This document shows, piece by piece, positions 311-35,285 of a stretch of DNA of 64,000 nucleotides. The DNA lies in the IMG/VR virus record IMGVR_UViG_3300017917_001342, positions 248,001 through 312,000 of that record. One strand, given 5' to 3'. The notes under the pieces are model-generated. The model saw only the letters and a list, made by a program, of their open reading frames with translations, had not been told where the DNA came from and searched no databases. The first letter of the stretch is position 1. Every line of letters begins with the position of its first letter. The translations under genes were made by a program, and so were the position numbers.

Positions 311-3232
311 ATGGTATACCAACTTATAACAGGACCAACTGGCTATACTGGCCCAACAGGTGTACCCGGTACTGCTGCAAACACTGGAGCACAAGGTGAT
401 CCTGGTCCAACTGGCCCAACTGGTTTACGAGGTATAACTGGACCTACAGGTCCGTTAGGTGGTCCAACTGGTCCGCAAGGCGGTCAAGGTGTTAAAGGCG
501 ATACTGGACCGACCGGCCCGGCAGGCAATGATGGTGTAACAGGTCCGCAAGGTGAACCGGGCACTGCTGCAAACACTGGACCTCAAGGCGATGCTGGACC
601 AACTGGTCCTACAGGGTTGCGTGGTACTACAGGTCCTACTGGACCGTTAGGTGGTCCAACTGGTCCACAAGGTACAAGAGGAGTTACAGGTCCTCAGGGA
701 TTAACTGGTGCAACTGGTGCAACTGGTAATATAGGTCCTACAGGGCCGTTAGGTGGTCCTACTGGTCCGCAAGGATTGCAGGGTGCAACTGGGCCTAGAG
801 GATTTCAAGGATATACTGGGCCTACTGGATTAGGATATACAGGTGCAACTGGCTCAACCGGACCTATAGGATTAACGGGTCCTATTGGTAACACAGGTCC
901 AACTGGTTATACAGGATTGCAAGGAACTACTGGCCCAACTGGCCCATTGGGCGGTCCTACAGGTCCAACTGGTACCATTGGTGATATAGGTCCAACCGGC
1001 CCAACCGGTAATGCTGGTTATACAGGCCCTACTGGTAATATTGGCCCTACTGGTGCAGCAAGCACAGTAACAGGCCCTACTGGATATACAGGCGTTACTG
1101 GACCAGCTGGTGCTGATGGTATTACTGGTTCAACTGGCCCAACAGGTGCCGCAAGTACAGTAACAGGCCCAACTGGATATACAGGTGTTACAGGTCCAGC
1201 TGGTGCAGATAGTGTAATTACTGGTCCAACTGGTGCAAATGGAAATAACGGAGCAACAGGTCCTACAGGTGCAAATGGCACTAACGGAGCAACTGGACCG
1301 ACTGGCGCAAACGGAATTAACGGATCAACTGGTCCTACAGGTGCAAATGGCACTAATGGAGCAACAGGCCCAACTGGTGCAAGCGGAGCAGATAGTACAG
1401 TAACAGGCCCTACTGGTGCTACAGGTGCAAATGGCACTAATGGAGCAACAGGCCCAACTGGTGCAAATGGCACTAATGGAGCAACAGGCCCAACTGGTGC
1501 AAGCGGAGCAGATAGTACAGTAACAGGCCCTACTGGTGCTACAGGTGCAAATGGAACTAATGGAGCAACGGGACCAACTGGTGCAGCAAGCACAGTAACA
1601 GGACCAACAGGCTATACAGGTGTTACAGGTCCAACAGGTACTAACAACCCATTTAACCAATCTCTTAATACAAGTGATGCAGTTGAATTTGCAAATTTAA
1701 TTGTTACAGGCAATGCACTTGTATTAACTAATCTTAATGTAAACGGCAATATTACTCTAAGCGGTAATGTTACACAAATATCCGGTAACAGTGGTCAATT
1801 TTTTGGTGATGTAAATGGTATAGGTGCACTGTATGCAGGTATATCGGTTGGCTATAGCACTGTTGTAAATCCTGTAATACAAAGTTCAGCTAGTATCGCA
1901 AATTATGTACAAAACAATTTCCAAAACATTAACAGTAGCAATATTGCATCAGCAGATTTAGTTGTTACAGCGGATAATGGTACTGATACTACACATTATA
2001 TAGATCTAGGTATTGCCAGTAGTGGATGGGATGGTACACAAGAAAACAGTATATCAACCGCGCTTTATCCAGACGATGGTTATCTATATGTTCAAGGACA
2101 TCCGGCATTTCCCGGAGAAGGTGGCAACCTTGTAATTGGTACCAGTATAACTGGAACGTCGTTAAAAATCATTGTAGGTGGCTCTAATTCTACAGCAATA
2201 GTTGCGCATTTTAATGCTGCAAATACTGTTACTAATAGCACAACTACAGGTGCATTAGTTGTCAATGGCGGAGTCGGTGTATCTGGTAACATATATTCTA
2301 GTGGTAATGTTGTAGCTCAAACTGTTATTGCAGATAACGTAATAGTAAATGGCCAACGTATAATATCTAGTACCGGACCAACTGGACCGACAGGCGCAGC
2401 AAGTACAATTACAGGACCAACAGGTGCTACAGGCGCAAATGGCACTAACGGAGCAACAGGCTTTACTGGTGCTACAGGTGCAAATGGTATTGATGGAGCA
2501 ACTGGACCTAACGGTATCAACGGAGCAACTGGTCCTACAGGCGCAAATGGTACTAACGGAGCAACAGGCCCTACAGGTGCTACAGGTGCAAATGGCACTA
2601 ACGGAGCAACGGGACCTACTGGTGCTACAGGTGCAAATGGCATTAACGGAGCAACGGGACCCACAGGTGCTAGCGGCGCAGATAGTACAGTAACAGGCCC
2701 TACTGGTGCTACAGGTGCAAATGGTACTAACGGGGCAACAGGCCCTACAGGTGCTAGCGGCGCAGATAGTACAGTAACAGGTCCTACTGGTGCTACAGGT
2801 GCAAATGGAACTAACGGAGCAACTGGCCCTACTGGACCAACTGGTGCAAATGGTACTGACGGAGCAACAGGTGCTACTGGTGCAAGTGGCCCAACTGGTA
2901 CATTACAGCCAAGAGTGACTCAGCTAGCTGATGCTACATCTGTTACATTTAACATTGATACTACAGATTTAGCATATCAAATTAATACTCAGGCTGTAGG
3001 AACGCTAACTATTAATGCACCAACTGGTACACCTGCGGACGGCCAAAAAATTGTATTTAGACTTAAATCTACAAATATACAGACATTTTCATGGAATGGT
3101 ATATTTGCAGGATCTATAGATTTACCGTTACCTACTGCATCAAGCGGCGGTTCTTTAACAGATTACTTGGGATTTGAATACAATGCAATCAACACCAAAT
3201 GGGATATATTAGGTAAAAACTTCGGATTTTAA
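311..3232 (+). CDS. Collagen-like (G-X-Y, GPT/GAT-rich) tail/head fibre protein
   Basis: Two long G-X-Y tracts flanking a central beta-rich domain, plus a C-terminal globular domain. Confidence 0.85.
1340..1580 (+). repeat. 120-bp near-perfect tandem duplication in collagen gene
   Basis: Lines 1381 and 1501 are identical except one base; a related 84-bp-period unit occurs at 2671/2755. Confidence 0.85.
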
Positions 3233-3431: not shown

Positions 3432-6400
3432 ATGGCAGATAGATATTGGGTAGGTGGTACTGGCGATTGGAGCGGAACTAATACTACAAACTGGTCAACT
3501 GCTAGCGGAGGTGCCGGAGGTGCATCTGTTCCGACTATCGCAGATAACGTATTTTTTGATCAAAATAGTGATCTAGCTGGCGCAGCATTTGTAGTAACTA
3601 TAACTCAATCAGCATCTAGTTTAAATTTCACTGTTCAAAATTTAGATAGTGCTATGACATTAGCAGGGTCTAATAACTTAGAAATAGATGGTAACTTATC
3701 ATTACCTGCTACTAATTTTACTGCTACTTACACTGGAAATTTAACATTTAACAGCAGTTCACCTAGAACTGTTAATACTAATGGCGTCACACTAGCCTGT
3801 AATATTTTTATAAACATGTCACCTAGCACGTTGACTCTGCAGGCAGCACTTACGACTACCGGATCTGTTACGTTAAGTGTTGGAACTTTAATTCTAGGCG
3901 GGTTTGCGTTAACTTGCGCTAGTTTTCTTTCGTCTAACAGTGCCACTCGTTCTATAACGTTTGGTACTACAGGGTCTATCAATTTATCAGGATCCGGTAC
4001 AGTATGGAATACATCTACTACTACAGGGTTTACCTACACTGGCACAAGTAACGTAAGATTAACCAATAGCGGTTCTACTACAACTGCTATAACAACTGGT
4101 AATTTGAGTTCTTCGCAGGCTTTGAATTTTAATGTTACCGCAGGAACATATAGCTTAACACTAGGATCTACCGCAGTATTCAATAACTTGAATTTTACTG
4201 GATTTAGTGGTTCATTTGATATGGCTGCTATATCTGCTACTGTGTATGGAAATACAACTTTTTCAAACACGATGACTACATCATCTACAACTGGTGTACT
4301 AACTCTTAGTCCGAGTAGCGGTGGCAAAACTATTACATCGAATGGCAACAGTTTAGCGTTGGCATTAACACTTAGTGGCACTGGAAGTACACTGCAATTA
4401 GTAGATAATTTAACAATAACTAAAGCGTTTACGTATTCTGGTAATACTTTAGATTTAAATTCAAATTCGCTGTCAGTGCAGAGTTTTGCGTCGCCTAGTG
4501 GTACTCGTGTTATTGCATTTGGTACAGGATCTATCACTACTACTGGTACTGGTACAGTATGGAACGTAAGCGGTACAATAGGCTTATCATATACTGGTAT
4601 TTCAAATATAACAATATCAAATAACACTGCAACTGCTGTTACAATCACAAACACTGCAACCGCAGCTAGTGCAATGAACTTTAATATTGTTAATGGTACA
4701 TATGCATTAACACTGACCAGTGGTAACAGCTATAGAAATTTGAACTTTACTGGTTTCAGTGGTACTTGGTCTCCAGCTGCTACTACACATACAATGTATG
4801 GTAATTTAACGATATCTGCTACTACACAAACTATTTCGCCTGCTACAGCAGGCAATGATACAATAACGTTTGCATCCACATCTGGCACAAATATTATAAC
4901 AACCAACAATTGGGTTATAAATTGCGGTATAGCAATAAACGGTGCGGGAGGAACGGTGCAGTTTGCAGATCTTTTTGGGCAGGGTCCCAGTTACAGTCTT
5001 AAACTAACAAACGGTACACTAGATATAAATTCTCAATCTACTAGTGCGGGAATTTTTACTATACTAAGTGGTACACATGCAATCTCAAATGGCATATTAA
5101 CCTGTGCAAGTGTTACTCATACCAGTGGTGATCTAAGTATAGGTACAGGATACAATGTGGTATGTAATGGCCTATATACATTTACTGCTGGCTCTATTAC
5201 TATCAACGACGGCGTCAATCTATCCATTAACTCAATGAGTTCTTCTAATACCAATACTAGAAGTATTGCATTTGGTACTGGTTCAATTACAACTACTGGT
5301 ACTGGTACAGTATGGAGTGTAACTGGAACAACCGGTTTATCATACACTGGTATTAGTAATATCATAATCTCAAACAACACGGCAACATCGATTACTATTA
5401 CCAATACTACATCCGCTGCAAGTGCTTTGAACTTTTATTTCATCAATGGCACTTACAATCTTCTCTTAACAACTGGTAATGTCTATAATGATTTAAACTT
5501 TACTGGGTTTGCCGGCGCTGTGTTAATTGGAACTAATACTAATACATTATACGGCAATCTCATAGTTAGCAACACTGCTAGTGTCAGTGGATCTGCTGCT
5601 ACTACAAATTTTGCATTTGCTGCAACTGGCGTAACCAGAACTATCACTACCGGCAATCGCACAGTTAACTTTGGTGTTAGCTTTAACGGTGTTGGGAGTA
5701 CATTCCAACTAGCTGACAATTTTATTCAATCTGTCGGCCAATATTTTCAAATAGTAAACGGCACAATTGATTTTAATAATGTAACTTATAGTTTAGGTAC
5801 ATTGGTTTTTGTAAATGGTACAAAATCTTACATTAACTATGGTGGTACACTAGCACCAGCGGCAATTATACATACATCTGGCAATGTAACATTAGATACA
5901 GGTGCAGTAATAACAACTGCGGGATCGTATACATTTAGTGCTGGTACTATTACACTGAATAACGGTGTTAATTTATCTGTTGGATCGTTTATTTCTAGTA
6001 ACAACAACACTCGTTTAATTGCATTTGGTACCAGTGCTATCATAGTTACTGGCACAGCTACAGTGTGGAACGTAACCGGTACTACTGGATTAAGTTATAA
6101 TGGTACCAGTAACATAGTTGTATCTAACACAACAACAACTGGAATTACTATTAGTAACAACACCGGTACCGCTGCAAATGCAATGAATTTCAATTTTATC
6201 AACGGCACATACGCATTAACATTTCCAAACACTGGAGGTAACTTTAATGATTTAAACTTTACTGGATTTGCTGGGACAGCTGATTTAGTTACAACAACTC
6301 ATACAATATATGGTAACCTTATAGTTGGCTCTACTGCTACAATCACCGGCACTGGTGGTACAGGTAATTTTATATTTTCTGCAACTAGCGGAACTAGAAC

Positions 6401-8639
6401 TGTCACTACCAGTAATCGTACAGTTACCTTTGGTGTTAACTTTAACGGTCTTGGTGGCACATTTCAGTTAGCTGACAATTTTATTCAAGCAGCGGCGCAG
6501 TCATTTATAATAACCAACGGTACAGTTGATTTCAATAATGTAACTTATAGTTTAGGTGCATTGACATTTGTAACAGGTACAAAGTCTTATATTAACTACG
6601 GTGGCACACTGGCACCCGCATCAGTTCTACATACATCTGGCAATGTAATATTAGATACAGGTGCATTGATAACAACTACGGGATCTTATACATTTACTAG
6701 TGGTAATATTATATTAAATAACGGTGTTAATTTATCTGTTGGATCGTTTATTTCTAATAACAATAACACTCGTTTAATTGCGTTTGGTACTGGTTCGATT
6801 ACTGTAAACGGCACCGGTACAATATGGAACGTGGCGGGTACTACTGGATTAAGTTATACTGGTACCAGTAACATTATTATATCTAACAATACAGCAACCG
6901 CAGCTACTATTAGTAACAACACCGGTACCGCTGCAAATGCTATGAATTTCAATTTTATCAATGGCACATACACATTAACGCTTCCAGTTACTGGGGTCTT
7001 TAATAATTTAAACTTTACTGGGTTTGCCGGTATAGTTGCATTTTCAAATAGATTGCAAACATTATATGGTAATTTGATAATTGGACCTAATACTTCGTCT
7101 ACTGGAACTAGCAGTGCTAATGGTGTAACATGGACTGCTACCAGTGGCACTAGAACTATTACTACTAATGGAAGAACAATTAACTTTGGTATTACTATAA
7201 ATGGTGTAGGACAAACTGTACGATTAACTGATGCACTTGTACAAGGTTCATCTCAGTATCTATATCTAACCAATGGTACATTAGATCTAGCAGGTTATTC
7301 AAACAGCTTTGGTGTGTTAAGTCTTGCAACAGGCAATCGTTCATTTATAAACGGTAATATCAACTGTACCACAGTGAATCATGACCGTGGTGACTTAACT
7401 GTAAATCCAGCAAATACTGTAATTGCGACCGGTGCATATAATCTTACAATAGGTAATCTTACCATCAATAGCGATGCTACATTATCAGTTGGTTCAATGA
7501 TATTCGCAGTTGGTGCGAAGTCTATTGCATTTAACACAGGTCGTATTAACTTAACAGGCACAGGTACTGTTTGGAATAGCAGTCTTCTTACTACTTTTAG
7601 TTACACAGGTACTAGCAATATTAGATTAACCAATAGCGGTTCTACAGCAACAACTATAACAACTGGTGCTATGACTGCTGCACAGGCATTGAATTACTAT
7701 GTAACTGCCGGTACTTATACGCTAACACTAACTAATGGTAATGTTTATAGAGATTTAAATTTTACTGGGTTTGCCGGTACTGTTGCGTTATCTGCAACTA
7801 CCCACACAATGTATGGCAATCTTACATTGGGACCTAGTACCAACACCAGTGCTACAGCCGGTACAAATAATTTTGCATGGACATCAACTAGCGGTATCAG
7901 AACTATCACTACCAACAGTCGTACAGCTAATTTTGGTATAAACATCAACGGCGCAGGTCAAACTGTACAATTAGCCGATAACTTTACACAGGGTGCAACA
8001 CAGGTTACAACATTAACTGCCGGCACATTAGATATCAACGGTAAAACACTAACTGCTGGTGCAACATTTGCAGCACCGGGTGCAGTTGCAAAAAATATAA
8101 CATTTAATAGTGGAACACTTATTTGTACTGCATCAACAACTACTGCATTTAATGCCAGTGGTTCAAACTTAACTACCACGGCTGGTACCGGTAACGGTGT
8201 AATATCGATGTCGGGTGCAACTGCTAAAACATTTGTAGGCGGCGGTGTTAATTATGCAGCAACACTTAGCCAAGACGGTCTAGGCAATTTGACTATAACT
8301 GGTAACAATACATTTGCAAATATACGTAACACAGTACAACCAACTGCGGTATTGTTTACAGCTAATAGTACCAATACATTTAGTAATTTTTCTCTAAGCG
8401 GTACATCTAGCAATTTAGTAACTATTACTAGTCCTACTGCATTTACTCACACATTGAGTAAATCCGGAAGCGATGTTCAAGTTTCGTATTGTGCAATAAG
8501 TTATTCAAATGCCACAGGTGGTGCAACATGGCGGGCACCAGGTAACTTAGGTAACCTCAACAACAATTTCAATACTGGATGGAATTTTTCGCCCACTTCT
8601 ACTACGGTAGTTCTCAGCAACATGATAGCATTCTTTTAA
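3432..8639 (+). CDS. Large T/G/S/N-rich beta-solenoid virion/adhesin protein with about 250-aa internal repeats
   Basis: N-terminus MADRYWVGGTGDW; about 6 copies of IAFGTGSIT..GTVWN..LSYTG.SNI; DNA repeat period 759 bp (5882/6641). Confidence 0.75.
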   Translation: MADRYWVGGTGDWSGTNTTNWSTASGGAGGASVPTIADNVFFDQNSDLAGAAFVVTITQSASSLNFTVQNLDSAMTLAGSNNLEIDGNLSLPATNFTATYTGNLTFNSSSPRTVNTNGVTLACNIFINMSPSTLTLQAALTTTGSVTLSVGTLILGGFALTCASFLSSNSATRSITFGTTGSINLSGSGTVWNTSTTTGFTYTGTSNVRLTNSGSTTTAITTGNLSSSQALNFNVTAGTYSLTLGSTAVFNNLNFTGFSGSFDMAAISATVYGNTTFSNTMTTSSTTGVLTLSPSSGGKTITSNGNSLALALTLSGTGSTLQLVDNLTITKAFTYSGNTLDLNSNSLSVQSFASPSGTRVIAFGTGSITTTGTGTVWNVSGTIGLSYTGISNITISNNTATAVTITNTATAASAMNFNIVNGTYALTLTSGNSYRNLNFTGFSGTWSPAATTHTMYGNLTISATTQTISPATAGNDTITFASTSGTNIITTNNWVINCGIAINGAGGTVQFADLFGQGPSYSLKLTNGTLDINSQSTSAGIFTILSGTHAISNGILTCASVTHTSGDLSIGTGYNVVCNGLYTFTAGSITINDGVNLSINSMSSSNTNTRSIAFGTGSITTTGTGTVWSVTGTTGLSYTGISNIIISNNTATSITITNTTSAASALNFYFINGTYNLLLTTGNVYNDLNFTGFAGAVLIGTNTNTLYGNLIVSNTASVSGSAATTNFAFAATGVTRTITTGNRTVNFGVSFNGVGSTFQLADNFIQSVGQYFQIVNGTIDFNNVTYSLGTLVFVNGTKSYINYGGTLAPAAIIHTSGNVTLDTGAVITTAGSYTFSAGTITLNNGVNLSVGSFISSNNNTRLIAFGTSAIIVTGTATVWNVTGTTGLSYNGTSNIVVSNTTTTGITISNNTGTAANAMNFNFINGTYALTFPNTGGNFNDLNFTGFAGTADLVTTTHTIYGNLIVGSTATITGTGGTGNFIFSATSGTRTVTTSNRTVTFGVNFNGLGGTFQLADNFIQAAAQSFIITNGTVDFNNVTYSLGALTFVTGTKSYINYGGTLAPASVLHTSGNVILDTGALITTTGSYTFTSGNIILNNGVNLSVGSFISNNNNTRLIAFGTGSITVNGTGTIWNVAGTTGLSYTGTSNIIISNNTATAATISNNTGTAANAMNFNFINGTYTLTLPVTGVFNNLNFTGFAGIVAFSNRLQTLYGNLIIGPNTSSTGTSSANGVTWTATSGTRTITTNGRTINFGITINGVGQTVRLTDALVQGSSQYLYLTNGTLDLAGYSNSFGVLSLATGNRSFINGNINCTTVNHDRGDLTVNPANTVIATGAYNLTIGNLTINSDATLSVGSMIFAVGAKSIAFNTGRINLTGTGTVWNSSLLTTFSYTGTSNIRLTNSGSTATTITTGAMTAAQALNYYVTAGTYTLTLTNGNVYRDLNFTGFAGTVALSATTHTMYGNLTLGPSTNTSATAGTNNFAWTSTSGIRTITTNSRTANFGININGAGQTVQLADNFTQGATQVTTLTAGTLDINGKTLTAGATFAAPGAVAKNITFNSGTLICTASTTTAFNASGSNLTTTAGTGNGVISMSGATAKTFVGGGVNYAATLSQDGLGNLTITGNNTFANIRNTVQPTAVLFTANSTNTFSNFSLSGTSSNLVTITSPTAFTHTLSKSGSDVQVSYCAISYSNATGGATWRAPGNLGNLNNNFNTGWNFSPTSTTVVLSNMIAFF

Positions 8640-10011: not shown

Positions 10012-10725
10012 TCAGAGATGTGGTTGTAGCTGTGTCGCATCACCTCTAAATGTAAAGTAACCCATATGGTTTAGAGTAATAGTAAGGTCGGCCCAAATCT
10101 TACCGCCCATTGCTCTCCAACGCTTACAGAATGTGTAGTCTTCTGATAGGTACTCTTTACTGTTAGGATCAATTTCAGTATCAAACAGTGCATACTTGAA
10201 TGGATCATATTTTGGATCAAGTCCGATACTGTCCACATAGTGCAGTTCTGGATGCTTAGCAATCATCTGTTCAAGCACATGTCGTTTGATCATCATAAAG
10301 CCGGTACCAAGGTTACTTACTTCAACTAAGTTACCTTCTTTGATTGCGCCTGGTACTTTGTTAACTACGTAGTTGATAGGCAATGCTTTTTTAGGATACA
10401 AGCCACCTACAACATCTTTGTTTGAAAGTATCAGTTTGAAAATTTCTTCTGGTTCAAAACCAATGTCTGCGTCAACAAACATCAAGTGTGTACTCTTTGG
10501 TTCAAAGTACAGCATTTTTGCAACAAGACTGTTGCGAGCGCGGCAAACTAGACTTTCGTTTACCATAGTGTCAATTGTAAAGTTCAAGCCAAGGCGTTGC
10601 GCAGTTGCCATGTACTTGAGCATACTAATAAAAGTGCCTTCGTTGATCTGACCGCCGTAGCAAGGTATACAGAAATGTACCCGTGCTGCTTGCAAGGTTT
10701 TGACCATATCTTGTGTGAGTTCCAT
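10012..10725 (-). CDS. GT-A-fold glycosyltransferase-like protein
   Basis: PCYGG, RARN, FVDAD (DxD), GTGFMMI, LSEDYTFC, final H. Confidence 0.75.
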   Translation of the reverse strand: MELTQDMVKTLQAARVHFCIPCYGGQINEGTFISMLKYMATAQRLGLNFTIDTMVNESLVCRARNSLVAKMLYFEPKSTHLMFVDADIGFEPEEIFKLILSNKDVVGGLYPKKALPINYVVNKVPGAIKEGNLVEVSNLGTGFMMIKRHVLEQMIAKHPELHYVDSIGLDPKYDPFKYALFDTEIDPNSKEYLSEDYTFCKRWRAMGGKIWADLTITLNHMGYFTFRGDATQLQPHL

Positions 10726-10796
10726 AGGTATCTCCGATCTGTCACATGTTTAATTATGTGGCAAATCGGAGACTTTTTCAAAATAGCAGTAGATAA

Positions 10797-12986
10797 TTAT
10801 TGTGGTACTTCGTCATCCATACCAGCAGTAAGCATGTTAAACGTATAGGTTGTGTCTACGGCATCAATATAGTCTACCAGTGCTGAAAGTTTTTCTTCGG
10901 TCATTGATTTACTGTAATAGCTAATACCGTAGTCAATATGCTTGAGCATGGAATATTTCTTACCGATGAATTCTGCCAGTATCACACGATCGCTGTTGAA
11001 TGTGGGTTCTTCAACCTTTACGCTAAAGTATCTGCAAAGATCTGTGATCATTGATGTGTTAGACGATCGCGAACTGCGAAGATGAATTAGATCGCTGAAG
11101 AATTTAATAAAATCGCTGTCTTTGTATTTCAAACGCTGTGATAGCGAATGAAACGAACCACCAGTTAGATTGTTGACAACTGAACTACCAATGGTTTTTC
11201 CAACTACTGTTTCAATTGCAGTGAGTTCAACGTTCTTAGCAATGCTGTTTAGATATTCTGAGTCTGTCGACAACCGAACAGCATGCGATTTTAGAAAATG
11301 TCCAAGGTGTACCCAATGAGCATTGCCTTTGACATTTTCCAAGTTCTTGCCACGAATACCATAGACTTTGATATTATTGGGAATCAGCTTCAATGTTTTT
11401 GCATGTTCCAAAACACGTTGAACGCCACCAACTGATGACGGGTGTTCACGTGTTACAATCACTTCCCACCCGTGCATAGGCAAGTAATAACAAATGTTTG
11501 TTTCAGACGCGATCACTTCGCTCGCCGGCGTCCAAGCTTTTTTACCACCGTCGACTTTGCAGTTCATCAGCCAAACTTCTGGCGGCTTAGTTCGAGTCTT
11601 CTTTTCCGGTGCAGCAAGTTCGCTGGTCAGCATATACTTGGGATGACCAAGCAGATTCAAAATAGTGTTCATGTCATCGTTATGCTTGAACACAACAATG
11701 TGATTTTTCAACAGTTTGGCAACATGATATTCTTTGACACGAGTGTGACTACCGCGTTTGGTATCATCAAACATAATAACAGTGTTTTCGGAACAGTTGA
11801 TATGCGGTTTAAGTGTTGCGTTTGCTGACTTTTTATCAATTGAAAATACACGGACCCCAAGCGAATCGTTTGAAATTCGATTAGCTGTTGCCAAATCTGC
11901 CAGATTAAGAATAAAGCTTTGGCTTTTGATTACTTCACCGCTGTGAACCGGCTTGTCATAGTCGTTATAGATTTTGCTAAACACAGAACCAAGGTCTTTG
12001 TCGTTAAACACTGCACCGTAGGCCTTACGTGCTTCCCAACGTGTGGGTTTGGATTCAACTGCATCCCACAGTGTGTGTTTGAGATCATTAACAACTGAAA
12101 TCAAACGATTGACAATGTTTGTGCTAGTGCGAGCATCATAGCCAATGCTTTCACGGCTAGCAGCCACTTCAAGATCGCCGATGTCAAATTCAATAACCAA
12201 CGGCAATTCGTTCATAGAATAGATAATGTCGATTTGATCCTGTGCAATAGCAGCCAAATCAATGCTATAGACATTGATTGGATATAGCACACCGCCCATC
12301 AGTGCCTGGAGAGATTCACCGTTCCAAAACCGCTTGCTCCAGATACGCCATCCTTTACCTGTGTAAGCAGCCGGTGTCATGAGTACATAGCTGATAGCAG
12401 TACCAGTTTGCACAGGCTTTTGATCAAACCATTGCAGAACTTCGACGGCTTTTGCTGCCCAGCGATTGATATCGCCGTACTTTACGTTGAATTTAACCGT
12501 AACACCGCTGTCGCTGCTAAACCCGCTGCCGACTGTTTCTACTCGCGGTGTATCTGTTGCGTCAAAATACATACGGTATTGAGTTGCAATACCTTTGTGC
12601 CGGCTGGTAACAAAAAACTCATTGGTATAGCTGAACGGACTCTTGCTGCCAAGTCCAAGCTGACCTACGTAGTCATTGCTAGAAGTTTTGGTGCTGGCGA
12701 AATACCGAGTGTAGATAGCATGTACATCTGCGTCGCTCATGCCAGTACCGTAATCAGTGATACTAAACCACTGTTCGTCAACAGTTGGCAAATGCATTTC
12801 CCAGGGATTTGTGTTTTTAGCTGCAACATGACTGTCGCGAGCATTACAGCTCAGTTCTCGAATCACTGCGCGAATCTTGTCGCTATACAAGCCGTCGCTA
12901 AGAATGCGGAAAGCTTTGCCTGTAGCAGCAATAGTAAATGCATCACCTTTGCCGGCAACGGTTGCAACGGTATCATTGATCTTCAT
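10797..12986 (-). CDS. rIIA: rIIA-like protein (N-terminal GHKL ATPase)
   Basis: LYSDKIRAVIRELSCNARDSH, DYGTGMS, STK, GQLGLGSKSPFSY. Confidence 0.8.
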   Translation of the reverse strand: MKINDTVATVAGKGDAFTIAATGKAFRILSDGLYSDKIRAVIRELSCNARDSHVAAKNTNPWEMHLPTVDEQWFSITDYGTGMSDADVHAIYTRYFASTKTSSNDYVGQLGLGSKSPFSYTNEFFVTSRHKGIATQYRMYFDATDTPRVETVGSGFSSDSGVTVKFNVKYGDINRWAAKAVEVLQWFDQKPVQTGTAISYVLMTPAAYTGKGWRIWSKRFWNGESLQALMGGVLYPINVYSIDLAAIAQDQIDIIYSMNELPLVIEFDIGDLEVAASRESIGYDARTSTNIVNRLISVVNDLKHTLWDAVESKPTRWEARKAYGAVFNDKDLGSVFSKIYNDYDKPVHSGEVIKSQSFILNLADLATANRISNDSLGVRVFSIDKKSANATLKPHINCSENTVIMFDDTKRGSHTRVKEYHVAKLLKNHIVVFKHNDDMNTILNLLGHPKYMLTSELAAPEKKTRTKPPEVWLMNCKVDGGKKAWTPASEVIASETNICYYLPMHGWEVIVTREHPSSVGGVQRVLEHAKTLKLIPNNIKVYGIRGKNLENVKGNAHWVHLGHFLKSHAVRLSTDSEYLNSIAKNVELTAIETVVGKTIGSSVVNNLTGGSFHSLSQRLKYKDSDFIKFFSDLIHLRSSRSSNTSMITDLCRYFSVKVEEPTFNSDRVILAEFIGKKYSMLKHIDYGISYYSKSMTEEKLSALVDYIDAVDTTYTFNMLTAGMDDEVPQ

Positions 12987-14002: not shown

Positions 14003-14365
14003 TTAGTCTTGATTGCGGTTTAGGTGACTTAGCCATACCATTTCAAAAAGCATTCTGTCATCGTTAGTTAGTTTGACAAAAAATTTACCAAATGATTCAT
14101 TAGCTTCGCCGTTTTCGGAGTGTCTATATTTCCAATCCGTTGCATTGTCAAGACAACCACCCGCTATCAACTGATGTGTTTCTTTACAAAATATAAAATT
14201 TCTAGTGCAATTATGGCATAACCATGTGTCCATAGCATACTCTTCATCTTGAGACCAATTTTGGTCAAATGTGTATTGTATGTCAAATAGACCAATAATC
14301 CTGTGATCAGTTGTAACACCGGGATATTCTGTTATGAAAAATGGGAACAGTTTTTCGTTACTCAT
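14003..14365 (-). CDS. Paralogue-family small protein
   Basis: WLCHNC...DDRMLFEMVW. Confidence 0.65.
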   Translation of the reverse strand: MSNEKLFPFFITEYPGVTTDHRIIGLFDIQYTFDQNWSQDEEYAMDTWLCHNCTRNFIFCKETHQLIAGGCLDNATDWKYRHSENGEANESFGKFFVKLTNDDRMLFEMVWLSHLNRNQD

Positions 14366-14370
14366 TGCAC

Positions 14371-14640
14371 TTACCCCCAAGTTAATTTGAACAGTGCTGC
14401 ATCATCTTTGTCGTAGATACCTATATAAAATGCAGGATCACCAGAGTTTAGTCTAAACTCGCAATATGACGGTTCTTTGATATTTTCATCAAACCATGCT
14501 TGTAATGCATCTAGTTCTTTGTTAGTGCAATGCCTAGCATATATGATACAGTTCCACGATGGATCCCTTGCCTCGGTCCATTGGTTAATAGCCGACATGT
14601 AGTGCGGTTTACCATCGTCGTATCTGTATTCCCATTTCAT
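14371..14640 (-). CDS. Paralogue-family small protein
   Basis: WFDENI...DKDDAALFKLTWG. Confidence 0.7.
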   Translation of the reverse strand: MKWEYRYDDGKPHYMSAINQWTEARDPSWNCIIYARHCTNKELDALQAWFDENIKEPSYCEFRLNSGDPAFYIGIYDKDDAALFKLTWG

Positions 14641-14642
14641 AG

Positions 14643-15056
14643 TCAATCTCGTGTTAGCCTATAGTGCATCCATGCGCTGTTGAGTTCGTCTATCAGTGCA
14701 ATACCATCGTCGTCACATTCTAAAGTACAGCGTTCTAGTTTGAAACTGCTGCCTATTTGTTTAGATATAGTTTCCCTAAACTGTATTACATAGCTGGTAT
14801 AATTTTCTAACGTGTTGTCACTTAGCATTTCAGTCAACCAGTCCGGGTAATAGGTAGTAGACATTTGATCACCACGTGATGTGTTCGACTGCCATTTTAA
14901 TGTTATAGGGTTTTGTATCGCAGCAGATTCAAAAGCCAGTATGGGTATAAAATACTGCAACCACAGTTGATTAACGTCTGCTGACCATTTGATCCACGGC
15001 TTACCTTCGCCGACTGCATGTAATCTAAAAGGACCTACTTGATCAATCACGGACAT
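14643..15056 (-). CDS. Hypothetical protein (divergent family member)
   Basis: Ends WMHYRLTRD; overlaps neighbours. Confidence 0.6.
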   Translation of the reverse strand: MSVIDQVGPFRLHAVGEGKPWIKWSADVNQLWLQYFIPILAFESAAIQNPITLKWQSNTSRGDQMSTTYYPDWLTEMLSDNTLENYTSYVIQFRETISKQIGSSFKLERCTLECDDDGIALIDELNSAWMHYRLTRD

Positions 15057-15291
15057 TGTTATTCCACACTAGTTTGAACATGAACACATCGTTATTGTCG
15101 ATGAATTCTATGTTGGTTTGATTTTTTAATATACCAGTTTCGCTACCTGGTTCCACTTCTATTAGCGTAGATCTAAGTGTCCATCGCTGCGGTTCCGGTA
15201 ACGGTGGATTTGGCATCATAGCATCTAACCACTCGCCTATTTCACCTAGAGGTATAGTGCCGCCTAGTTTTACAACTTTTATATCTGTCAT
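15043..15291 (-). CDS. Paralogue-family small protein
   Basis: EWLDA...FIDNNDVFMFKLVW; ATGA overlap with upstream gene. Confidence 0.7.
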   Translation of the reverse strand: MTDIKVVKLGGTIPLGEIGEWLDAMMPNPPLPEPQRWTLRSTLIEVEPGSETGILKNQTNIEFIDNNDVFMFKLVWNNNVRD

Positions 15292-15626
15292 GCCCACCTC
15301 ATTAAAAATGCCATTGCATCAGCACGACTGCGAAATCTAAATTCGCCATGCAATTCACTAACAACTGTGAGATTGTGCGGCTTAGTTAAACGATAGGTCT
15401 TAACAGTGCAGTTTACCCACACTGTTTTTTTAAAATTAGGTATGTTGTCTTTGATCCATTCATACCTATCTCTATAATCGTTAACGTATTTGATACCAAC
15501 AGTTTCAGTCTTAACTGCATGCCGATTAAAAATTAAACTATACGTGTATCTCAACGGCCTGAATAGCCGATGTAACGCAGATGGTGCATTAGCCAGTGAT
15601 GTCACGATAGTCGAAATTTTCATCAT
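15288..15626 (-). CDS. Paralogue-family small protein
   Basis: EWIKDNI...FRFRSRADAMAFLMRWA; start uncertain. Confidence 0.7.
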   Translation of the reverse strand: MMKISTIVTSLANAPSALHRLFRPLRYTYSLIFNRHAVKTETVGIKYVNDYRDRYEWIKDNIPNFKKTVWVNCTVKTYRLTKPHNLTVVSELHGEFRFRSRADAMAFLMRWA

Positions 15627-15912
15627 ACTTTTCCCAGGTGTTGTTTTCGTAGTCCCAGTGTCGGTTATCATGAAAGTCGATGACCAATCCATACCCAAGA
15701 ATATCTAGATGCAGTCTAACACCGGCATGGTCTTGACCTCTAATAGCAGTGTCAAGAGTGATAGCAAACAGATCTGTCATTTGACCCCAGCGGCTAAATT
15801 GAACCTCTAGGTATTTGTGACCAAACAGATGTTTGTTGTAAACTATGTAATCTTTTTGTGGTTTGGGTTTTGATTTAAAATAGTTGATTATGGAGAAATG
15901 GATGTGAAACAT
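15589..15912 (-). CDS. Hypothetical phage protein
   Basis: DHAG...HDNRHWDYENNTW. Confidence 0.65.
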   Translation of the reverse strand: MFHIHFSIINYFKSKPKPQKDYIVYNKHLFGHKYLEVQFSRWGQMTDLFAITLDTAIRGQDHAGVRLHLDILGYGLVIDFHDNRHWDYENNTWEKYDENFDYRDITG

Positions 15913-15961
15913 GATAGCCGGCCATTATGCTGAATGTTTATTGAGTGTACAGTACGGGTTC

Positions 15962-16264
15962 TTATACGTCAAGTTTTATAGTAGTTGCGGGCCAATTCAT
16001 ACGAAACCACATTATGTCTTCTTGATTTTCAAACAGTACAAACCAATGGTCGCTAGGTGATGTTCTCACTGTGCTCATAAACCATCGCTTTGGCAAATTT
16101 TCAAGTGACAGGTCTTTTAGATCTGGTAAGTACCCAAGATTGGTTTCGCACCATTCAAATACATCATCTACATCACCTTGCGGTATGTTTAACAAGTGCC
16201 AACCGTTGTCTAACAATCGGTGCATTATTTTTTGTCGTAGCTGTATCAATGTGCCTATTCCCAT
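15962..16264 (-). CDS. Paralogue-family small protein
   Basis: EWCETNLG...FENQEDIMWFRMNW. Confidence 0.7.
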   Translation of the reverse strand: MGIGTLIQLRQKIMHRLLDNGWHLLNIPQGDVDDVFEWCETNLGYLPDLKDLSLENLPKRWFMSTVRTSPSDHWFVLFENQEDIMWFRMNWPATTIKLDV

Positions 16265-16680
16265 TAGTCTACCTGATACCATCCCAGTTCATACAGGTCT
16301 GAACGAATTTCGTCTGTGACTGTGCCTAGTTCCACTGTGTTGTTGTCGTTCATATAGAAGTCAAGATAACCTCCATATTCTCGCATATCTGCAACAACAC
16401 CACCGGCATAGCGCCAGCTACAACACCAAGTGTCGTTTTTCAAAATTGTTAACATATCTCTGCGTTGCCAAGTAGTATTACACAATGCTGCATAGAGATT
16501 CTGTGCATAGACATCATTCTTGACTTTTTCGCAAAGCGTATCGCTGGTACGCAGGTCGTACTCGAGATTATTCTCTTGCCATTCTGGATCAGTTTCGCGT
16601 TTACGAGTTGCTAAATTGATTTCCTTGTATATTTCAGTCAGCACATCGTATCGCTGTTCACTTGTGCGCAACTTGGTCAT
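16264..16680 (-). CDS. Hypothetical phage protein
   Basis: YAQNLYAALCN...SWRYAGGVVADMR; ATGA overlap. Confidence 0.7.
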   Translation of the reverse strand: MTKLRTSEQRYDVLTEIYKEINLATRKRETDPEWQENNLEYDLRTSDTLCEKVKNDVYAQNLYAALCNTTWQRRDMLTILKNDTWCCSWRYAGGVVADMREYGGYLDFYMNDNNTVELGTVTDEIRSDLYELGWYQVD

Positions 16681-16919
16681 TTCCATGTTAACCTATATTC
16701 AACCCAGGTAGGTTCATCCATAAATGCAATTATAACATCTACATACGAATAAGTTGTAGCTTCTGCGTAATGTTCGAATTCAATTTTACACCCACGGTCT
16801 TCTAGCCATTCTATTATATCTAGATACGGGCCGTATATTTCCTGCATCTTAGGTATGGTTAGATACTCGTGCTTATCTCGTGTAATTTTACCTATGTTTA
16901 CTCGTATCAATGTGTTCAT
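16677..16919 (-). CDS. Paralogue-family small protein (YRLxW subtype)
   Basis: WLEDRG...DEPTWVEYRLTWK; similar to 54312-54566. Confidence 0.7.
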   Translation of the reverse strand: MNTLIRVNIGKITRDKHEYLTIPKMQEIYGPYLDIIEWLEDRGCKIEFEHYAEATTYSYVDVIIAFMDEPTWVEYRLTWK

Positions 16920-17164
16920 GACCATGTTAATGTAAACAGTGCAAAATCTTCACGGTGTTTAAAATAAAAGTTAGAACCATCTTCCATCCAACGTATGGTT
17001 TTTGCCTTAGCAGTCATACTGGAGTAGTATTCTTTTTTACTCGAACCTTCTATACCAAAGTGTTCGTTGCACCAAGCAAGTACTATACTGTATGGAGTAT
17101 CTAACCGTTTAAAGCTAGCTACATAAAAAGAAACACCTGCAAAAATTGTTACAGTCTCGGCCAT
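16916..17164 (-). CDS. Paralogue-family small protein
   Basis: WCNEHFG...FKHREDFALFTLTWS; start uncertain. Confidence 0.65.
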   Translation of the reverse strand: MAETVTIFAGVSFYVASFKRLDTPYSIVLAWCNEHFGIEGSSKKEYYSSMTAKAKTIRWMEDGSNFYFKHREDFALFTLTWS

Positions 17165-17397
17165 CCGGTTAGATCTTCTGCACTTAGTATTATAAGCATA
17201 AGCTCTTCTTGACTAATGTCATTATCTTTACGACGATAGCTGCGATCTTTAACCCACTTTTTGTTATTGCCTTCAATTGTCAATACATAATCGCATTTTT
17301 GCATTAGTTTATGATCGTTATCACCAAATATCACGTACTTTGGTAAGTCGTAGTATTCAGCTACATGATCGTTTAAGATACCATAAAACTTTGTCAT
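17149..17397 (-). CDS. Hypothetical protein
   Basis: ATGA overlap, GAGGTG SD. Confidence 0.6.
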   Translation of the reverse strand: MTKFYGILNDHVAEYYDLPKYVIFGDNDHKLMQKCDYVLTIEGNNKKWVKDRSYRRKDNDISQEELMLIILSAEDLTGWPRL

Positions 17398-17555
17398 AGC
17401 CACCTCAATCTAAAAAACGTCCATGCTGCGTCTGTGTAAAACATAATAGTTTCCCAACCATTGTAAGACCAATCCGCTGGCTCTAAACTGTTGTCGCACC
17501 AAGATATAATTGTATACATAGGTGCTGCACCGTTGTATTGCCATTCAACTGTCAT
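17394..17555 (-). CDS. 53-aa minimal paralogue-family protein (not in ORF track)
   Basis: MTVEWQY...SWCDNSL...FYTDAAWTFFRLRWL; ATGA overlaps at both ends. Confidence 0.7.
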   Translation of the reverse strand: MTVEWQYNGAAPMYTIISWCDNSLEPADWSYNGWETIMFYTDAAWTFFRLRWL

Positions 17556-17932
17556 TGCCAACACATTTTAAATGCCAGTGCGTCTTCATTATTTGCAAAC
17601 CAAAAATCTGTATGACTGCATACCCAACTGCCGTTTTTAAGATTGTCGTAACACCAATCGAGTGCCTGCGAATACAAATCGTCTCGTCTACTTACTTTAA
17701 CGTGCAAATATCCGAGACTCGTTAGATATTCTGGATGATGGTAAACACGACGATTATATACTCGCAAGAAATATCTGTAATGGTCTTTGGTAAGTTTAAC
17801 ACGCCCGCGCCAGCCATTTTTTAACCCAAAAATACCAGCTGCTGGCCCAACCATTGGTTGAACACCTATAATTTCATGTGCAATGAGTGTTGGTAAAACA
17901 CGGCGAATTATTGGTAACAGTACAGAGTTCAT
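17552..17932 (-). CDS. Fusion of a major-capsid (gp23 Gol-region-like) fragment and the paralogue-family domain
   Basis: VLLPIIRRVLPTLIAHEIIGVQPMVGPAAGIF plus WCYDNL...FANNEDALAFKMCW. Confidence 0.75.
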   Translation of the reverse strand: MNSVLLPIIRRVLPTLIAHEIIGVQPMVGPAAGIFGLKNGWRGRVKLTKDHYRYFLRVYNRRVYHHPEYLTSLGYLHVKVSRRDDLYSQALDWCYDNLKNGSWVCSHTDFWFANNEDALAFKMCWQ

Positions 17933-18165
17933 TCCCACCTCAGAATCATATACATGCGATCTTCTTCATGCAAGAAGTTAAACTGTAGATCATTGGCATA
18001 CCATCTACGTGGCGGAATAGTATCGCAGAGACTTGGATCGCCGAACTGTTCAACTGCCCAGAGGTACATAGCTTTCCATTTCTCTTTGCGTTTGCTGTAC
18101 AGGCCCAAATCCGGCCTATACCGATAGTACGTATCGCCGTGCCTCTGAATTTCACCCGTTTGCAT
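17929..18165 (-). CDS. Paralogue-family small protein
   Basis: WAVEQFG...FLHEEDRMYMILRWE. Confidence 0.7.
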   Translation of the reverse strand: MQTGEIQRHGDTYYRYRPDLGLYSKRKEKWKAMYLWAVEQFGDPSLCDTIPPRRWYANDLQFNFLHEEDRMYMILRWE

Positions 18166-18166
18166 T

Positions 18167-18427
18167 TTATAGCCATATCAGTTTAAACAACACTACATCT
18201 TCGTCAAGTTCAAGTCGCACAAATCCCATACCAACCCAATAGCGACCGTGGCAGTTGAGTTCACACCAGTCAAACAGTCTAGCACGAGTCTCTTCTCTCA
18301 AAACTTTGCCATTGTCAATGGGATCTCGAATGAAGATCTGTGTACCAAGGGATTGATCAAACAGCAGTTTCTCCTTTGTAACAGTAGGTTCAACTGTGAG
18401 CAATCTTTTACTGTCAGTGTTTGTCAT
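18167..18427 (-). CDS. Paralogue-family small protein
   Basis: WCELNC...LELDEDVVLFKLIWL. Confidence 0.7.
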   Translation of the reverse strand: MTNTDSKRLLTVEPTVTKEKLLFDQSLGTQIFIRDPIDNGKVLREETRARLFDWCELNCHGRYWVGMGFVRLELDEDVVLFKLIWL

Positions 18428-18645
18428 TTAGACCACGTTAATGTAAATGCCAGTCGCTGTTCTTCTGTAACCCAATCCTCAAATTCGACCCAGAACGTAG
18501 TGCGACGACGAGCTCTAAAATTGAAATTGTTAGCAATTACCCAACCATTTCCGGCCATTCTACTTCTAGCTGTGCCTATGTTGGTGTCTAACCATGCAAT
18601 TAACTCGTCTTTGTCGCAATCGTTATTAAAGATATATTTGATCAT
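18424..18645 (-). CDS. Paralogue-family small protein
   Basis: WLDTNIG...EEQRLAFTLTWSK. Confidence 0.7.
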   Translation of the reverse strand: MIKYIFNNDCDKDELIAWLDTNIGTARSRMAGNGWVIANNFNFRARRRTTFWVEFEDWVTEEQRLAFTLTWSK

Positions 18646-18866
18646 CCCCAACGCATCCTGAACCACAGTGTGTCATCAGCTGATTCAAAGCAGAATTCAT
18701 TGTGATTTCGCGGCCATGCACTGATTGTACGAACATAGTATTGACCTAACATTTCATTGTCAACCCAATCTAAAACAGCAGTTAGCTCTGTTCTTGAACT
18801 CAGTGTAATTCTAACTGCGTTCCAATCTGCAATGTTGTCAGGCGGTAGAATTACACGTTTAGCCAT
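18642..18866 (-). CDS. Paralogue-family small protein
   Basis: WVDNEM...FESADDTLWFRMRWG. Confidence 0.7.
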   Translation of the reverse strand: MAKRVILPPDNIADWNAVRITLSSRTELTAVLDWVDNEMLGQYYVRTISAWPRNHNEFCFESADDTLWFRMRWG

Positions 18867-19253: not shown

Positions 19254-19643
19254 TCAAAGTTTTCTAAAATCAACACGTTCGCTGTAGTAGCCATTGCTAG
19301 TACCATACCAACGCAGATGCACACCACCTTTGATAGTGTGCAGTTTGTAATAGGTCCAAGTGTAGCTTTCGTCGTATTCGTTGCGAGGACCGTCGTGCTT
19401 TATCTGATGTTCAAGATTAGTAACTTCATCTGCAATCAGTATCGGCGAACCAACAAGATCGTCAAAATCACCGTTGTAATCTTCAAGCCATACAGATTCG
19501 CAGCAGCTTTGATCGTGGTACAACTGATAACGGTCACCGTCAACAGTTTCAAATTCGAGAATTTCTCGATCACTAGACAGTTCAACTCGTGACAAAGTTT
19601 TACCTACTAATTCGGAAATGTTGTGTTCGTCGTACCAGCCCAT
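19254..19643 (-). CDS. Conserved hypothetical phage protein
   Basis: HDQSCCESV, WTYY, WYGTSNGYYSE; AGGA SD. Confidence 0.75.
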   Translation of the reverse strand: MGWYDEHNISELVGKTLSRVELSSDREILEFETVDGDRYQLYHDQSCCESVWLEDYNGDFDDLVGSPILIADEVTNLEHQIKHDGPRNEYDESYTWTYYKLHTIKGGVHLRWYGTSNGYYSERVDFRKL

Positions 19644-19653
19644 GATTATTCCT

Positions 19654-19851
19654 TTACCAACTGTCGTAATCTGTAAAATCTTTCCATACACCAGACCCTT
19701 CATCTGTTTCTGCAAATGCAATAACAGTCTGTCCGATGTTTGTCTGTGTGACTTTTATTTCTATAGGAATGTTTCGAGGCCCGAGCGTATCAGCCCAGGC
19801 CGCCAAACGTCTAATGTCTTCAAGTCGCAATTTAACACTAGTATCTGTCAT
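19654..19851 (-). CDS. Hypothetical protein
   Basis: Fits operon packing; ends DFTDYDSW. Confidence 0.6.
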   Translation of the reverse strand: MTDTSVKLRLEDIRRLAAWADTLGPRNIPIEIKVTQTNIGQTVIAFAETDEGSGVWKDFTDYDSW

Positions 19852-34671: not shown

Positions 34672-34983
34672 TCAAGCAGCTACGGGCCATTTAGATTTAA
34701 ATTCTTCTAGTTGGAGGTCGGTTGATAGATACAGTATACCACTGTCTACAGCAGAACCTCTGTACTTCATACAGTCCCAGGCCCACGGCATCTTTTTACC
34801 AGTGTATTCGTAATAGTTTATCCAATGCATAGATTCAATGCCAGAGCCCCATTGTGACCAACACCAGTCTCTTGCATCAAAAAATTCCAGAATTCCCCAA
34901 CTGATTTGATGCATCATATAACCGTGTAGTTGATTTCGATTACCAACTGGCTTAACAGTCCAATCCATTAATATTTTCCCCAT
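34672..34983 (-). CDS. Paralogue-family small protein
   Basis: WCWSQWG...LYLSTDLQLEEFKSKW. Confidence 0.65.
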   Translation of the reverse strand: MGKILMDWTVKPVGNRNQLHGYMMHQISWGILEFFDARDWCWSQWGSGIESMHWINYYEYTGKKMPWAWDCMKYRGSAVDSGILYLSTDLQLEEFKSKWPVAA

Positions 34984-35285
34984 GTAAATCTAAACAGCAT
35001 AGCATCTTCTTCTGTGAGAAACCATACATGGCTTTCAACCCAAGCGTAGTTTGAGCCATAGGCATCATAGCACCATTGCATGATAGCAGGTGCATCTTTT
35101 GCTGCGGCTTTGTCAAGTTTGATTCCGTAATATCCTGCGTCTTTAAATGCAGCAGACGACACTATGCGTTTAGGATCAAGCTTGGTAAACACTAGACGAT
35201 ATCGATCGCGCGAAGGTACGGCATTGCGACCAACATCACGATGCTTTGAAAACCGAGCAGGTGTTCTAAGATTCTTATTGATCAT
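34968..35285 (-). CDS. Paralogue-family small protein
   Basis: WCYDAYG...FLTEEDAMLFRFTWG. Confidence 0.7.
   Translation of the reverse strand: MINKNLRTPARFSKHRDVGRNAVPSRDRYRLVFTKLDPKRIVSSAAFKDAGYYGIKLDKAAAKDAPAIMQWCYDAYGSNYAWVESHVWFLTEEDAMLFRFTWGKY

Follow-up and report, generated by a model that had tools for sequence, protein, structure and literature searches.

A proposed capsid-fragment display protein encoded by a jumbo phage

An uncultured phage with a 518-kb genome encodes a small, conserved protein whose N-terminal tail, predicted to be flexible, is a copy of the most conserved stretch of the phage's own major capsid protein, namely the segment known in T4 as "Gol", which binds EF-Tu; the tail is joined to a small domain that is widespread in phages. 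Relatives carry a sister gene in which a second, different capsid piece is fused to the same domain, so that phages seem to display pieces of their capsid protein on purpose. The function of these proteins is inferred rather than shown, and the most likely reading is that they are competitive mimics of unassembled capsid protein, acting either as decoys for capsid- or EF-Tu-based immunity or as modulators of assembly. To our knowledge, this is a new kind of element: literature searches for phage-encoded capsid-fragment fusion proteins found no description of such a family, and no full-length homologue was detected in 50,697 deposited phage genomes.

The gene and its setting

The gene lies within a 64,000-nucleotide stretch of DNA (hereinafter the window) that belongs to the IMG/VR contig UViG_3300017917_001342 (518,643 bp), whose closest cultured relatives, judged by topoisomerase II, are Sinorhizobium phage Phosso (58%) and Agrobacterium phage Atu_ph07 (50%). 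The gene is on the minus strand, with the ATG at 17932-17930 and the stop codon at 17554-17552, and encodes a protein of 126 amino acids that contains the peptide SVLLPIIRRVLPTLIAHEIIGVQPMVGPAAGIFGLK in its N-terminal part. The start codon overlaps the stop codon of the upstream gene as ATGA, and the stop codon overlaps the ATG of the downstream gene in the same manner, so that the gene is one link in a tightly packed, probably translationally coupled, same-strand chain of small genes. The features of the region are as follows.

17552-17932, minus strand: the whole gene (126 amino acids plus stop), a capsid N-arm/Gol piece fused to a carrier that is predicted to be folded; an identical protein and 19 full-length relatives were found
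17819-17932, minus strand: residues 1-38, the copy of the T4-type capsid N-arm/Gol segment, predicted to be flexible
17708-17812, minus strand: residues 41-75, a basic linker sub-domain (GRVKLTKDHYRYFLRVYNRR..HHPEYLTSLGY), the most conserved part of this subfamily, with invariant columns in the family alignment and no Pfam or PHROG match
17555-17707, minus strand: residues 76-126, the shared family domain (helix with W-C, beta-hairpin F.F, helix ..ED(A)..F.L.W)
17936-17941, minus strand: the Shine-Dalgarno sequence GAGGTG, 3 nt upstream of the ATG, which, together with the relatives, supports ATG 17932 rather than GTG 17938 as the start
14003-18866, minus strand: a same-strand array of small, overlapping genes, at least 12 of which carry the family domain (14003-14380, 14371-14646, 15043-15297, 15288-15698, 15962-16282, 16916-17164, 17394-17564, 17552-17938, 17929-18165, 18167-18427, 18424-18666 and 18642-18866; jackhmmer E-values from 8.7e-30 to 2e-3)
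34968-35285, minus strand: a dispersed paralogue with the family domain; others are at 50272-50523, 55858-56031 and 58109-58405, all on the minus strand

The sequence-only reading that prompted this analysis described a stand-alone copy of the capsid Gol region fused to the domain of a local family, and this observation is correct. It further placed the gene in an early region of the genome; however, a scan for promoters and terminators did not rise above the shuffled background, so that early expression is unverified. The other inferences of that reading, in particular that the family domain might be a carrier for bait peptides and that the protein might be a capsid-mimic decoy, an EF-Tu binder or an assembly modulator, are partly supported, as discussed below.

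Homology to the T4-type major capsid protein

The match of residues 2-39 to T4-type capsid proteins is far beyond chance and is recovered with several independent references. The Pfam profile PF07068 (Gp23) is matched with E=2.4e-10 and 40.8 bits, against a curated cut-off of 24.4, over profile positions 5-42 of 376, and PHROG 138 (major head protein) is matched with E=4.8e-10. Among the 50,697 deposited phage genomes, the best matches are the capsid genes of jumbo phages of the Rak2/GAP32/121Q type, with 66% identity over 38 residues and 78% identity at the DNA level over about 75 nt. A tblastn search with the capsid protein of GAP32 hits the window at this gene only (25/38 identical residues, GAP32 residues 58-95, E=2e-11), so that no other part of a capsid protein is present in this gene or elsewhere in the window. 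The absence of a significant match to gp23 had been named in advance as grounds for abandoning the idea; in the event, a profile built from the family hits the solved T4 gp23 chains at residues 94-129 with E=4.6e-6. A second alignment in the same comparison, of the linker to the C-terminus of gp23, had a score of -2.1 and was dropped as not significant. The Gol peptide cited in the sequence-only reading is exact, given that residues 93-122 of gp23 in the T4 record read PAVMGMVRRAIPNLIAFDICGVQPMNSPTG.

Despite this homology, the protein is not a capsid protein: it lacks the complete HK97-type fold (E-loop or insertion domain, P domain with spine helix, A domain), its remaining 85 residues match nothing in the capsid protein, and it is 126 amino acids long compared to 391-521 for capsid proteins. 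Homology to Gol is likewise clear, with 15 of 39 residues identical to T4, but the binding of EF-Tu domains II-III and the cleavage of EF-Tu by Lit at Gly59-Ile60, the activities that define Gol, were not assayed, and conservation of the 13 residues of the 20-residue core that were found to be essential by scanning mutagenesis (Copeland & Kleanthous 2005) was not examined.

The comparison with the phage's own capsid protein, which had also been proposed as a check, required that gene to be located outside the window. A scan of IMG/VR with a degenerate DNA pattern identified it on the same contig (locus L113, positions 3595-4851, minus strand; here and below, L followed by a number denotes an examined locus). 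The Gol segment of this capsid protein is LNKVILPVIRRVMPTVIANEIIGVQPMTGPVGQIHTLRV, the consensus of 223 Rak2-like and Atu_ph07-like capsid proteins in which nearly every position is at least 90% conserved. A scaffold-like protein of the phage is encoded at L113:4814-6022. The capsid gene of Atu_ph07 was found as well, whereas a scan of 420-469 kb of Phosso for its capsid gene gave nothing. The copy in the small gene matches the phage's own capsid protein at 24 of 39 residues; at the DNA level, 72 of 123 bases are identical (58.5%), with third codon positions, at 15/38, near saturation. Thus, this is an old, diverged copy, and a recent duplication or gene conversion from the phage's own capsid gene is rejected. 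Because the capsid segment is invariant across the clade, co-variation of the fragment with each phage's own capsid protein was not assessed.

Conservation of the fusion

Lack of conservation or decay of the fragment in relatives had been the other outcome specified beforehand as fatal to the idea, and it was not observed. A search restricted to proteins of similar length yielded 19 relatives of 118-145 amino acids, with 49-85% identity, all of which align end to end and carry the Gp23 hit, on contigs of up to 374 kb and 323 kb. The conserved core of the piece is V.LP.IR.V.P...A..IIGVQPM..P...IF, and the family retains 6 of the 8 positions that are identical across five capsid proteins, from T4 through three jumbo-phage proteins (the phage's own, GAP32 and Atu_ph07) to one from an uncultured phage. 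In the comparison with the closest relative (85% amino acid identity, dS about 0.9), dN/dS is 0.05 for codons 1-40 and 0.12 for the rest, although this estimate rests on a single sequence pair with about 30 synonymous sites in the piece. So could the gene be a functionless mosaic left by illegitimate recombination between the capsid gene and the paralogue array? Arrays of paralogues recombine readily, and one relative has a tandem paralogue of the gene in which the Gol motif has degenerated (L003:10423-10806). However, the retention of the reading frame and the motif in the 19 relatives, the low dN/dS and the age of the preserved copy bring this possibility close to refutation, all the more so because the relatives are not near-clonal, with dS of about 0.9 even to the closest one.

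Architecture of the protein and the carrier domain

An AlphaFold2 model built on the 20-sequence alignment gives block mean pLDDT values of 45-51 over residues 1-40, with segments 1-7, 18-34 and 36-38 below 50, and of 82-94 over residues 41-126 (83-88 for the linker sub-domain and 82-94 for the family domain). The capsid piece is therefore predicted to be a flexible tail on a compact domain, although the low confidence of the tail might partly reflect the shallow alignment. The compact part consists of the basic, highly conserved sub-domain (GRV.LTKDHYRHFLRVYNRR..HHPEYLTSLGY) and the C-terminal module shared with the neighbouring genes, which comprises a W(C)..N helix, a variable loop, an F.F hairpin and a ..(E/D)D(A)..F.L.W helix at the end of the protein (predicted helix 86-97, strands 103-106 and 109-112, and helix 115-125).

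A jackhmmer search started from the C-terminal 51 residues recovers about 16 open reading frames in the window (E=8.7e-30 for the protein itself and 1e-19 to 1e-9 for paralogues), 12 of which lie in the array, and also the second fusion described below. A profile of this module detects 2,469 clusters (50% identity) at E<=1e-3 among 1.84 billion representatives, most of them 50-160 amino acids long, with the module at the very C-terminus. No structure or function is known for this domain: it has no Pfam or PHROG family, no PDB fold match with E<=1e-3, and a search of BFVD returned only uncharacterised small phage proteins. Pfam and PHROG scans of 30 array members and relatives revealed no annotated family apart from Gp23 and DUF7448.

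A second capsid piece on the same carrier

In the relatives with contigs of 374 kb and 323 kb, a gene 0.4-1.1 kb downstream of the orthologue also carries a Gp23 hit, but to a different part of the profile (positions 136-198, E=7e-16 and 6e-17). The first ~60 residues of its product align to residues 151-208 of the GAP32 capsid protein (45%, E=4e-12) and directly to residues 252-315 of T4 gp23 (44%, E=3e-13), whereas its C-terminus is the same family module. A capsid-protein profile run over all loci finds this pair of genes in L002, L003/L004, L013, L014 (with a stop/start overlap), L015 and L196, that is, in six related contigs, with the second gene 0-1.1 kb downstream; an additional hit for the second fusion in the uncultured phage LR756508 turned out to be simply the full-length capsid protein of that phage. 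The AlphaFold2 model of the second protein shows a disordered stretch of 22 residues at the N-terminus, low confidence for residues 20-40, a long helix at 38-57 (pLDDT rising from about 56 to about 82) and then the carrier with pLDDT values of 83-91. In L014, for example, the orthologue lies at 23-415 and its sister gene at 412-750. The window phage and its closest relative lack the full second gene near the first, and the contig of the window phage has only a shorter, helix-only version about 230 kb away (L183:5989-6237).

The suggestion that the family domain could be a carrier for bait peptides thus gains real support, and the scan of other members' N-termini that had been proposed along with it produced a mixed outcome. 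Among the 149 best family representatives, seven carry a Gol-like N-terminus according to the capsid profile, and up to ten by eye, two of which lack the basic linker, so that such N-termini occur on several variants of the domain. The wider guess, that other members carry pieces of other core proteins, is not supported: only capsid pieces were detectable, and N-termini with a Walker-A-like GKS motif that looked terminase-like by eye found no support in Pfam or PHROG. Other contigs carry the same two capsid pieces in small open reading frames without the carrier.

What is known of the two pieces in the capsid comes from T4. Met98, which lies inside Gol, belongs to an N-terminal region that is disordered in the unexpanded head, becomes an extended, ordered N-arm upon expansion and joins the portal-anchoring cluster, and the E-loop equivalent carries the insertion domain (PMC9546572). 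The second piece contains the spine-helix sites 292/306/307, mutation of which bypasses the requirement for the gp31 chaperonin. Accordingly, piece 1 is the N-arm leading into the E-loop/insertion linker and piece 2 is the return strand plus the spine helix, so that the two pieces flank the E-loop/insertion domain in the capsid sequence; that the two strands pair at the base of the loop follows from the general HK97 topology and was not examined on coordinates.

Possible functions

The hypothesis that we favor, albeit tentatively (probability of about 0.4), is that the gene encodes a capsid-segment display protein, in which a compact carrier of 85 residues, consisting of the basic linker sub-domain and a small alpha-beta-beta-alpha domain common in phage accessory genes, holds out a flexible copy of the N-arm/Gol segment, the most conserved linear stretch of T4-type capsid proteins. 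Under this hypothesis, the protein would act as a competitive mimic of unassembled or nascent capsid protein and would occupy the partner that normally grips this segment, before or while the real capsid protein is made. By homology with T4 Gol, the most specific candidate for this partner is EF-Tu (domains II-III) or an immune sensor that reads the capsid protein together with EF-Tu (a Lit-type protease or an Avs7-type STAND), and the likeliest pay-off would be the blunting of capsid-triggered abortive infection. In relatives, the protein probably works with the neighboring sister protein, which displays the strand and spine helix from the other side of the E-loop/insertion domain. The analysis itself demonstrates the homology of the piece and the two-piece gene pair in relatives, conservation under purifying selection, the prediction of a flexible tail on a folded carrier and the placement in a patchy array of accessory genes, whereas any binding partner, the decoy outcome and cooperation between the two proteins are our inferences.

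This scenario is compatible with several lines of evidence. In T4, Gol (29 residues; gp23 93-122) works as a peptide that binds EF-Tu domains II-III with a preference for EF-Tu:GDP, inhibits the EF-Tu GTPase and makes EF-Tu cleavable by Lit, the protease of Escherichia coli e14; the Gol region was noted as the most conserved part of gp23 and was proposed to bind EF-Tu in all T4-like hosts (PMC3014915). The segment is essentially invariant in the 223 jumbo-phage capsid proteins and in this phage's own, which makes it an ideal target for sensors, and several defense families sense capsid proteins, with Avs7 building EF-Tu into its complex. The distribution of the gene is patchy, with no full-length homologue in the deposited genomes, including Phosso and Atu_ph07, and the setting resembles that of accessory genes; the neighbors in the relative with the tandem paralogue include weak Lar-like restriction-alleviation and Macro hits.

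There are also serious difficulties. In T4, the free Gol peptide activates Lit rather than blocking it (PMC3014915), so that a faithful copy made early should trigger that system, and a blocking role requires the diverged positions to uncouple binding from activation. The copy differs from the phage's own capsid protein at 15 of 39 positions (for example, IH to IF), with unknown effect, and the second piece has no known link to EF-Tu. There are no binding or phenotype data, be it for EF-Tu, Lit or a capsid sensor, complexes were not modelled, and the host, with its EF-Tu, Lit-like proteases and defense systems, has not been identified. Furthermore, the N-arm plus the spine helix is the face that scaffolding proteins grip in other HK97-fold phages, which favors a role in assembly.

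In this alternative, which we consider less likely and doubtful on present evidence, the displayed N-arm, together with the strand and spine helix of the sister protein, would bind the scaffolding core, the portal, the prohead protease or the capsid protein itself and, as a cap or competitor for the surface that normally holds these elements, would delay, nucleate or size-regulate the assembly of the very large capsid. The ordering of the N-arm on expansion and its part in portal anchoring, the chaperonin-related sites in the spine helix, the possibility that the two flanking pieces pair and the strong purifying selection are all compatible with such a role, and capsid-protein homologues that redirect assembly are known (SaPIbov5 Ccm; PMC8569155). 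However, the gene lies in an array of small accessory paralogues and not in the head module, the capsid gene being outside the 64-kb window; it is absent from the closest cultured relatives, which assemble similar capsids; the window phage lacks the full sister gene; and the tandem paralogue with a decayed motif suggests birth-and-death evolution.

Two further possibilities appear unlikely. The Gol-like tail could dock the basic carrier onto EF-Tu in the GDP form to slow or redirect host translation, independent of any immune system. The inhibition of the EF-Tu GTPase by Gol and its preference for EF-Tu:GDP (PMC3014915), as well as the strongly basic character of the linker, are in line with this idea, and relatives encode homologues of the C-terminal domain of ribosomal L7/L12 (Pfam hits) 3.5-5 kb upstream; this stalk domain contacts EF-Tu. 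However, the L12-like gene is absent from the window, EF-Tu is so abundant that stoichiometric inhibition would be costly, and the spine-helix sister protein is left unexplained. Even less likely, the protein could be a weapon against co-infecting T4-type phages, that is, a dominant-negative fragment that poisons head assembly or capsid-protein folding of competitors. The conservation of the segment across all T4-type capsid proteins would give one fragment a broad reach, and similar capsid-piece open reading frames occur in other phage contigs, even without the carrier, but the phage's own capsid protein carries the same consensus segment, so that self-poisoning would have to be avoided by timing, and there is no evidence of exclusion.

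Comparison with known systems

The closest known counterpart is the Gol-Lit exclusion system, which involves the same segment of the same protein family; in T4, however, Gol is a liability of the capsid protein and not a separate factor, whereas here the segment is part of a separate gene product, fused to an unrelated domain and encoded outside the capsid gene. In concept, the protein resembles DSAD1, a small phage protein that competes with the tail-tube protein, a conserved virion protein, for the sensor site of DSR2 (PMC11087589). DSAD1 is not derived from the trigger, whereas the present candidate competitor is a literal copy of part of the trigger, and no sensor has been identified for it; no precedent for capsid-fragment decoys turned up in the literature searched. 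The SaPIbov5 Ccm protein is also an extra homologue of the capsid protein, encoded by a mobile element, that intervenes in head assembly, but Ccm enters the shell (PMC8569155). Ccm has a full HK97 fold, whereas the present protein retains only about 38 residues of the capsid protein (about 60 in the sister protein) and cannot form a shell subunit. Among viruses of eukaryotes, poxvirus K3L is a truncated copy of eIF2-alpha, a protein recognized by an immune effector, and serves as a competitive pseudo-substrate; K3L copies a host protein, however, whereas here the copied protein is the virus's own.

Implications

An intriguing, if unlikely, possibility that is not excluded by the available evidence is that jumbo phages of the Atu_ph07-like lineage encode a two-part mini-capsid-protein, with the N-arm/Gol segment displayed by one small protein, the strand and spine helix displayed by its neighbor, and both sitting on the same carrier domain. 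Together, the two would imitate the face of nascent capsid protein that is read by host factors (EF-Tu, chaperonin) and by capsid-sensing immune receptors, and would therefore act as self-derived decoys, a phage copying its own molecular pattern to blind pattern recognition; this would be the first such case.

Many bacterial defenses are now known to fire on the major capsid protein, including Lit, CapRel, Avs7/8/10 and Dsr1, and how phages with an unchangeable capsid motif escape them has yet to be explained. The family described here takes exactly the invariant capsid segment known to bind EF-Tu and offers it, as predicted, as a free peptide on a carrier, and a sister family does the same with the spine-helix segment, which makes the question directly testable. 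If these proteins are decoys, they define a new anti-defense principle, self-derived pattern mimicry, and would be a ready tool to probe which sensors read which capsid epitope; if they act in assembly, they are a new class of head-assembly regulators for giant capsids. Either way, they provide a first functional handle on a very large, uncharacterised family of small phage proteins.

Capsid pieces and the family domain in related and other contigs

In loci of related contigs, a sister gene lies 0-1.1 kb downstream of the orthologue of the Gol-segment fusion gene. The first ~60 residues of its product are the capsid strand plus spine helix (T4 gp23 252-315), fused to the same family domain. 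This gene is found at the following positions, where L002, L003, L013, L014 and L015 denote the individual loci:

L002:11476-11805, sister gene
L003:10810-11151, sister gene
L014:412-750, sister gene
L015:3542-3862, sister gene
L013:10525-10875, sister gene

The contig of the window itself encodes, about 230 kb from the Gol-segment fusion gene (locus L183:5989-6237), an 82-aa protein that has only the spine-helix-like motif (AKILQEEIDKEVL) plus the family domain, and similar helix-only versions are common in other contigs (loci L169, L170, L185, L186 and L196). Furthermore, L003 contains, at 10423-10806, a tandem paralogue of the orthologue of the Gol-segment fusion gene that has the same 85-residue carrier but in which the Gol motif has degenerated (VLSPVIGNATTNVISSQSIGRALRRV).

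The same two capsid pieces are also carried, without the carrier domain, by small ORFs in other viral contigs, namely at L198:4808-5270, L184:1210-1672 and L222:6720-7070. In L198, the two ORFs overlap within a (DEK)n / (MKK)n repeat, which could be a frameshift site or an assembly error.

Beyond the capsid-derived fusions, many members of the family-domain superfamily, among them the proteins P0261, P0262, P0263, P0264, P0283 and P0286, are tandem duplications of the domain, whereas others (P0320, P0390) have an N-terminal transmembrane helix plus coiled coil. In P0350, P0373, P0401 and P0266, the N-termini contain a Walker-A-like G(R)xxGKS motif and, by eye, looked like pieces of the large terminase; however, comparison with Pfam and PHROGs gave no support for this identification.

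Other genes of the window phage and its relatives

Two relatives encode homologues of the C-terminal domain of ribosomal protein L7/L12 (precomputed PF00542 hits), at L002:6531-6917 and L003:5010-5411, that is, 3.5-5 kb upstream of the orthologue of the Gol-segment fusion gene; these homologues are absent from the window. In the window, the following additional genes were identified:

311-3232 (+), a 973-aa protein with eight matched stretches to the Pfam Collagen repeat (E=7.8e-65)
3432-8639 (+), the following gene, a 1,735-aa protein with no Pfam match
10797-12986 (-), a 729-aa protein with an HATPase_c_3 (GHKL/MORC-type) ATPase domain
19254-19721 (-), a DUF7448 protein (E=3.5e-27)
36769-38622 (-), a full-length Hsp70/DnaK homologue (Pfam HSP70 E=2.6e-271)
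42213-43466 (-), a ClpX-like AAA+ unfoldase with the ClpX zinc finger
59897-61261 (-) and 61254-63131 (-), topoisomerase II subunits (GyrA-like and GyrB-like)

The collagen-repeat protein and the 1,735-aa protein that follows it are possibly fibre or surface proteins. The protein with the HATPase_c_3 domain is conserved at the same relative position in the closest relative (L005:14945-17134). The DUF7448 gene is located just upstream of the paralogue array, and the same domain flanks the arrays in relatives (L002:4272-4700, L005:8290-8679).

The 420-469 kb region of Sinorhizobium phage Phosso (L007) is very dense in tRNA genes, of which there are dozens, including one annotated as tRNA-Pyl(cta), interspersed with small hypothetical genes. 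It is next to this phage and Agrobacterium phage Atu_ph07 that the window phage was placed using the two topoisomerase II subunits.
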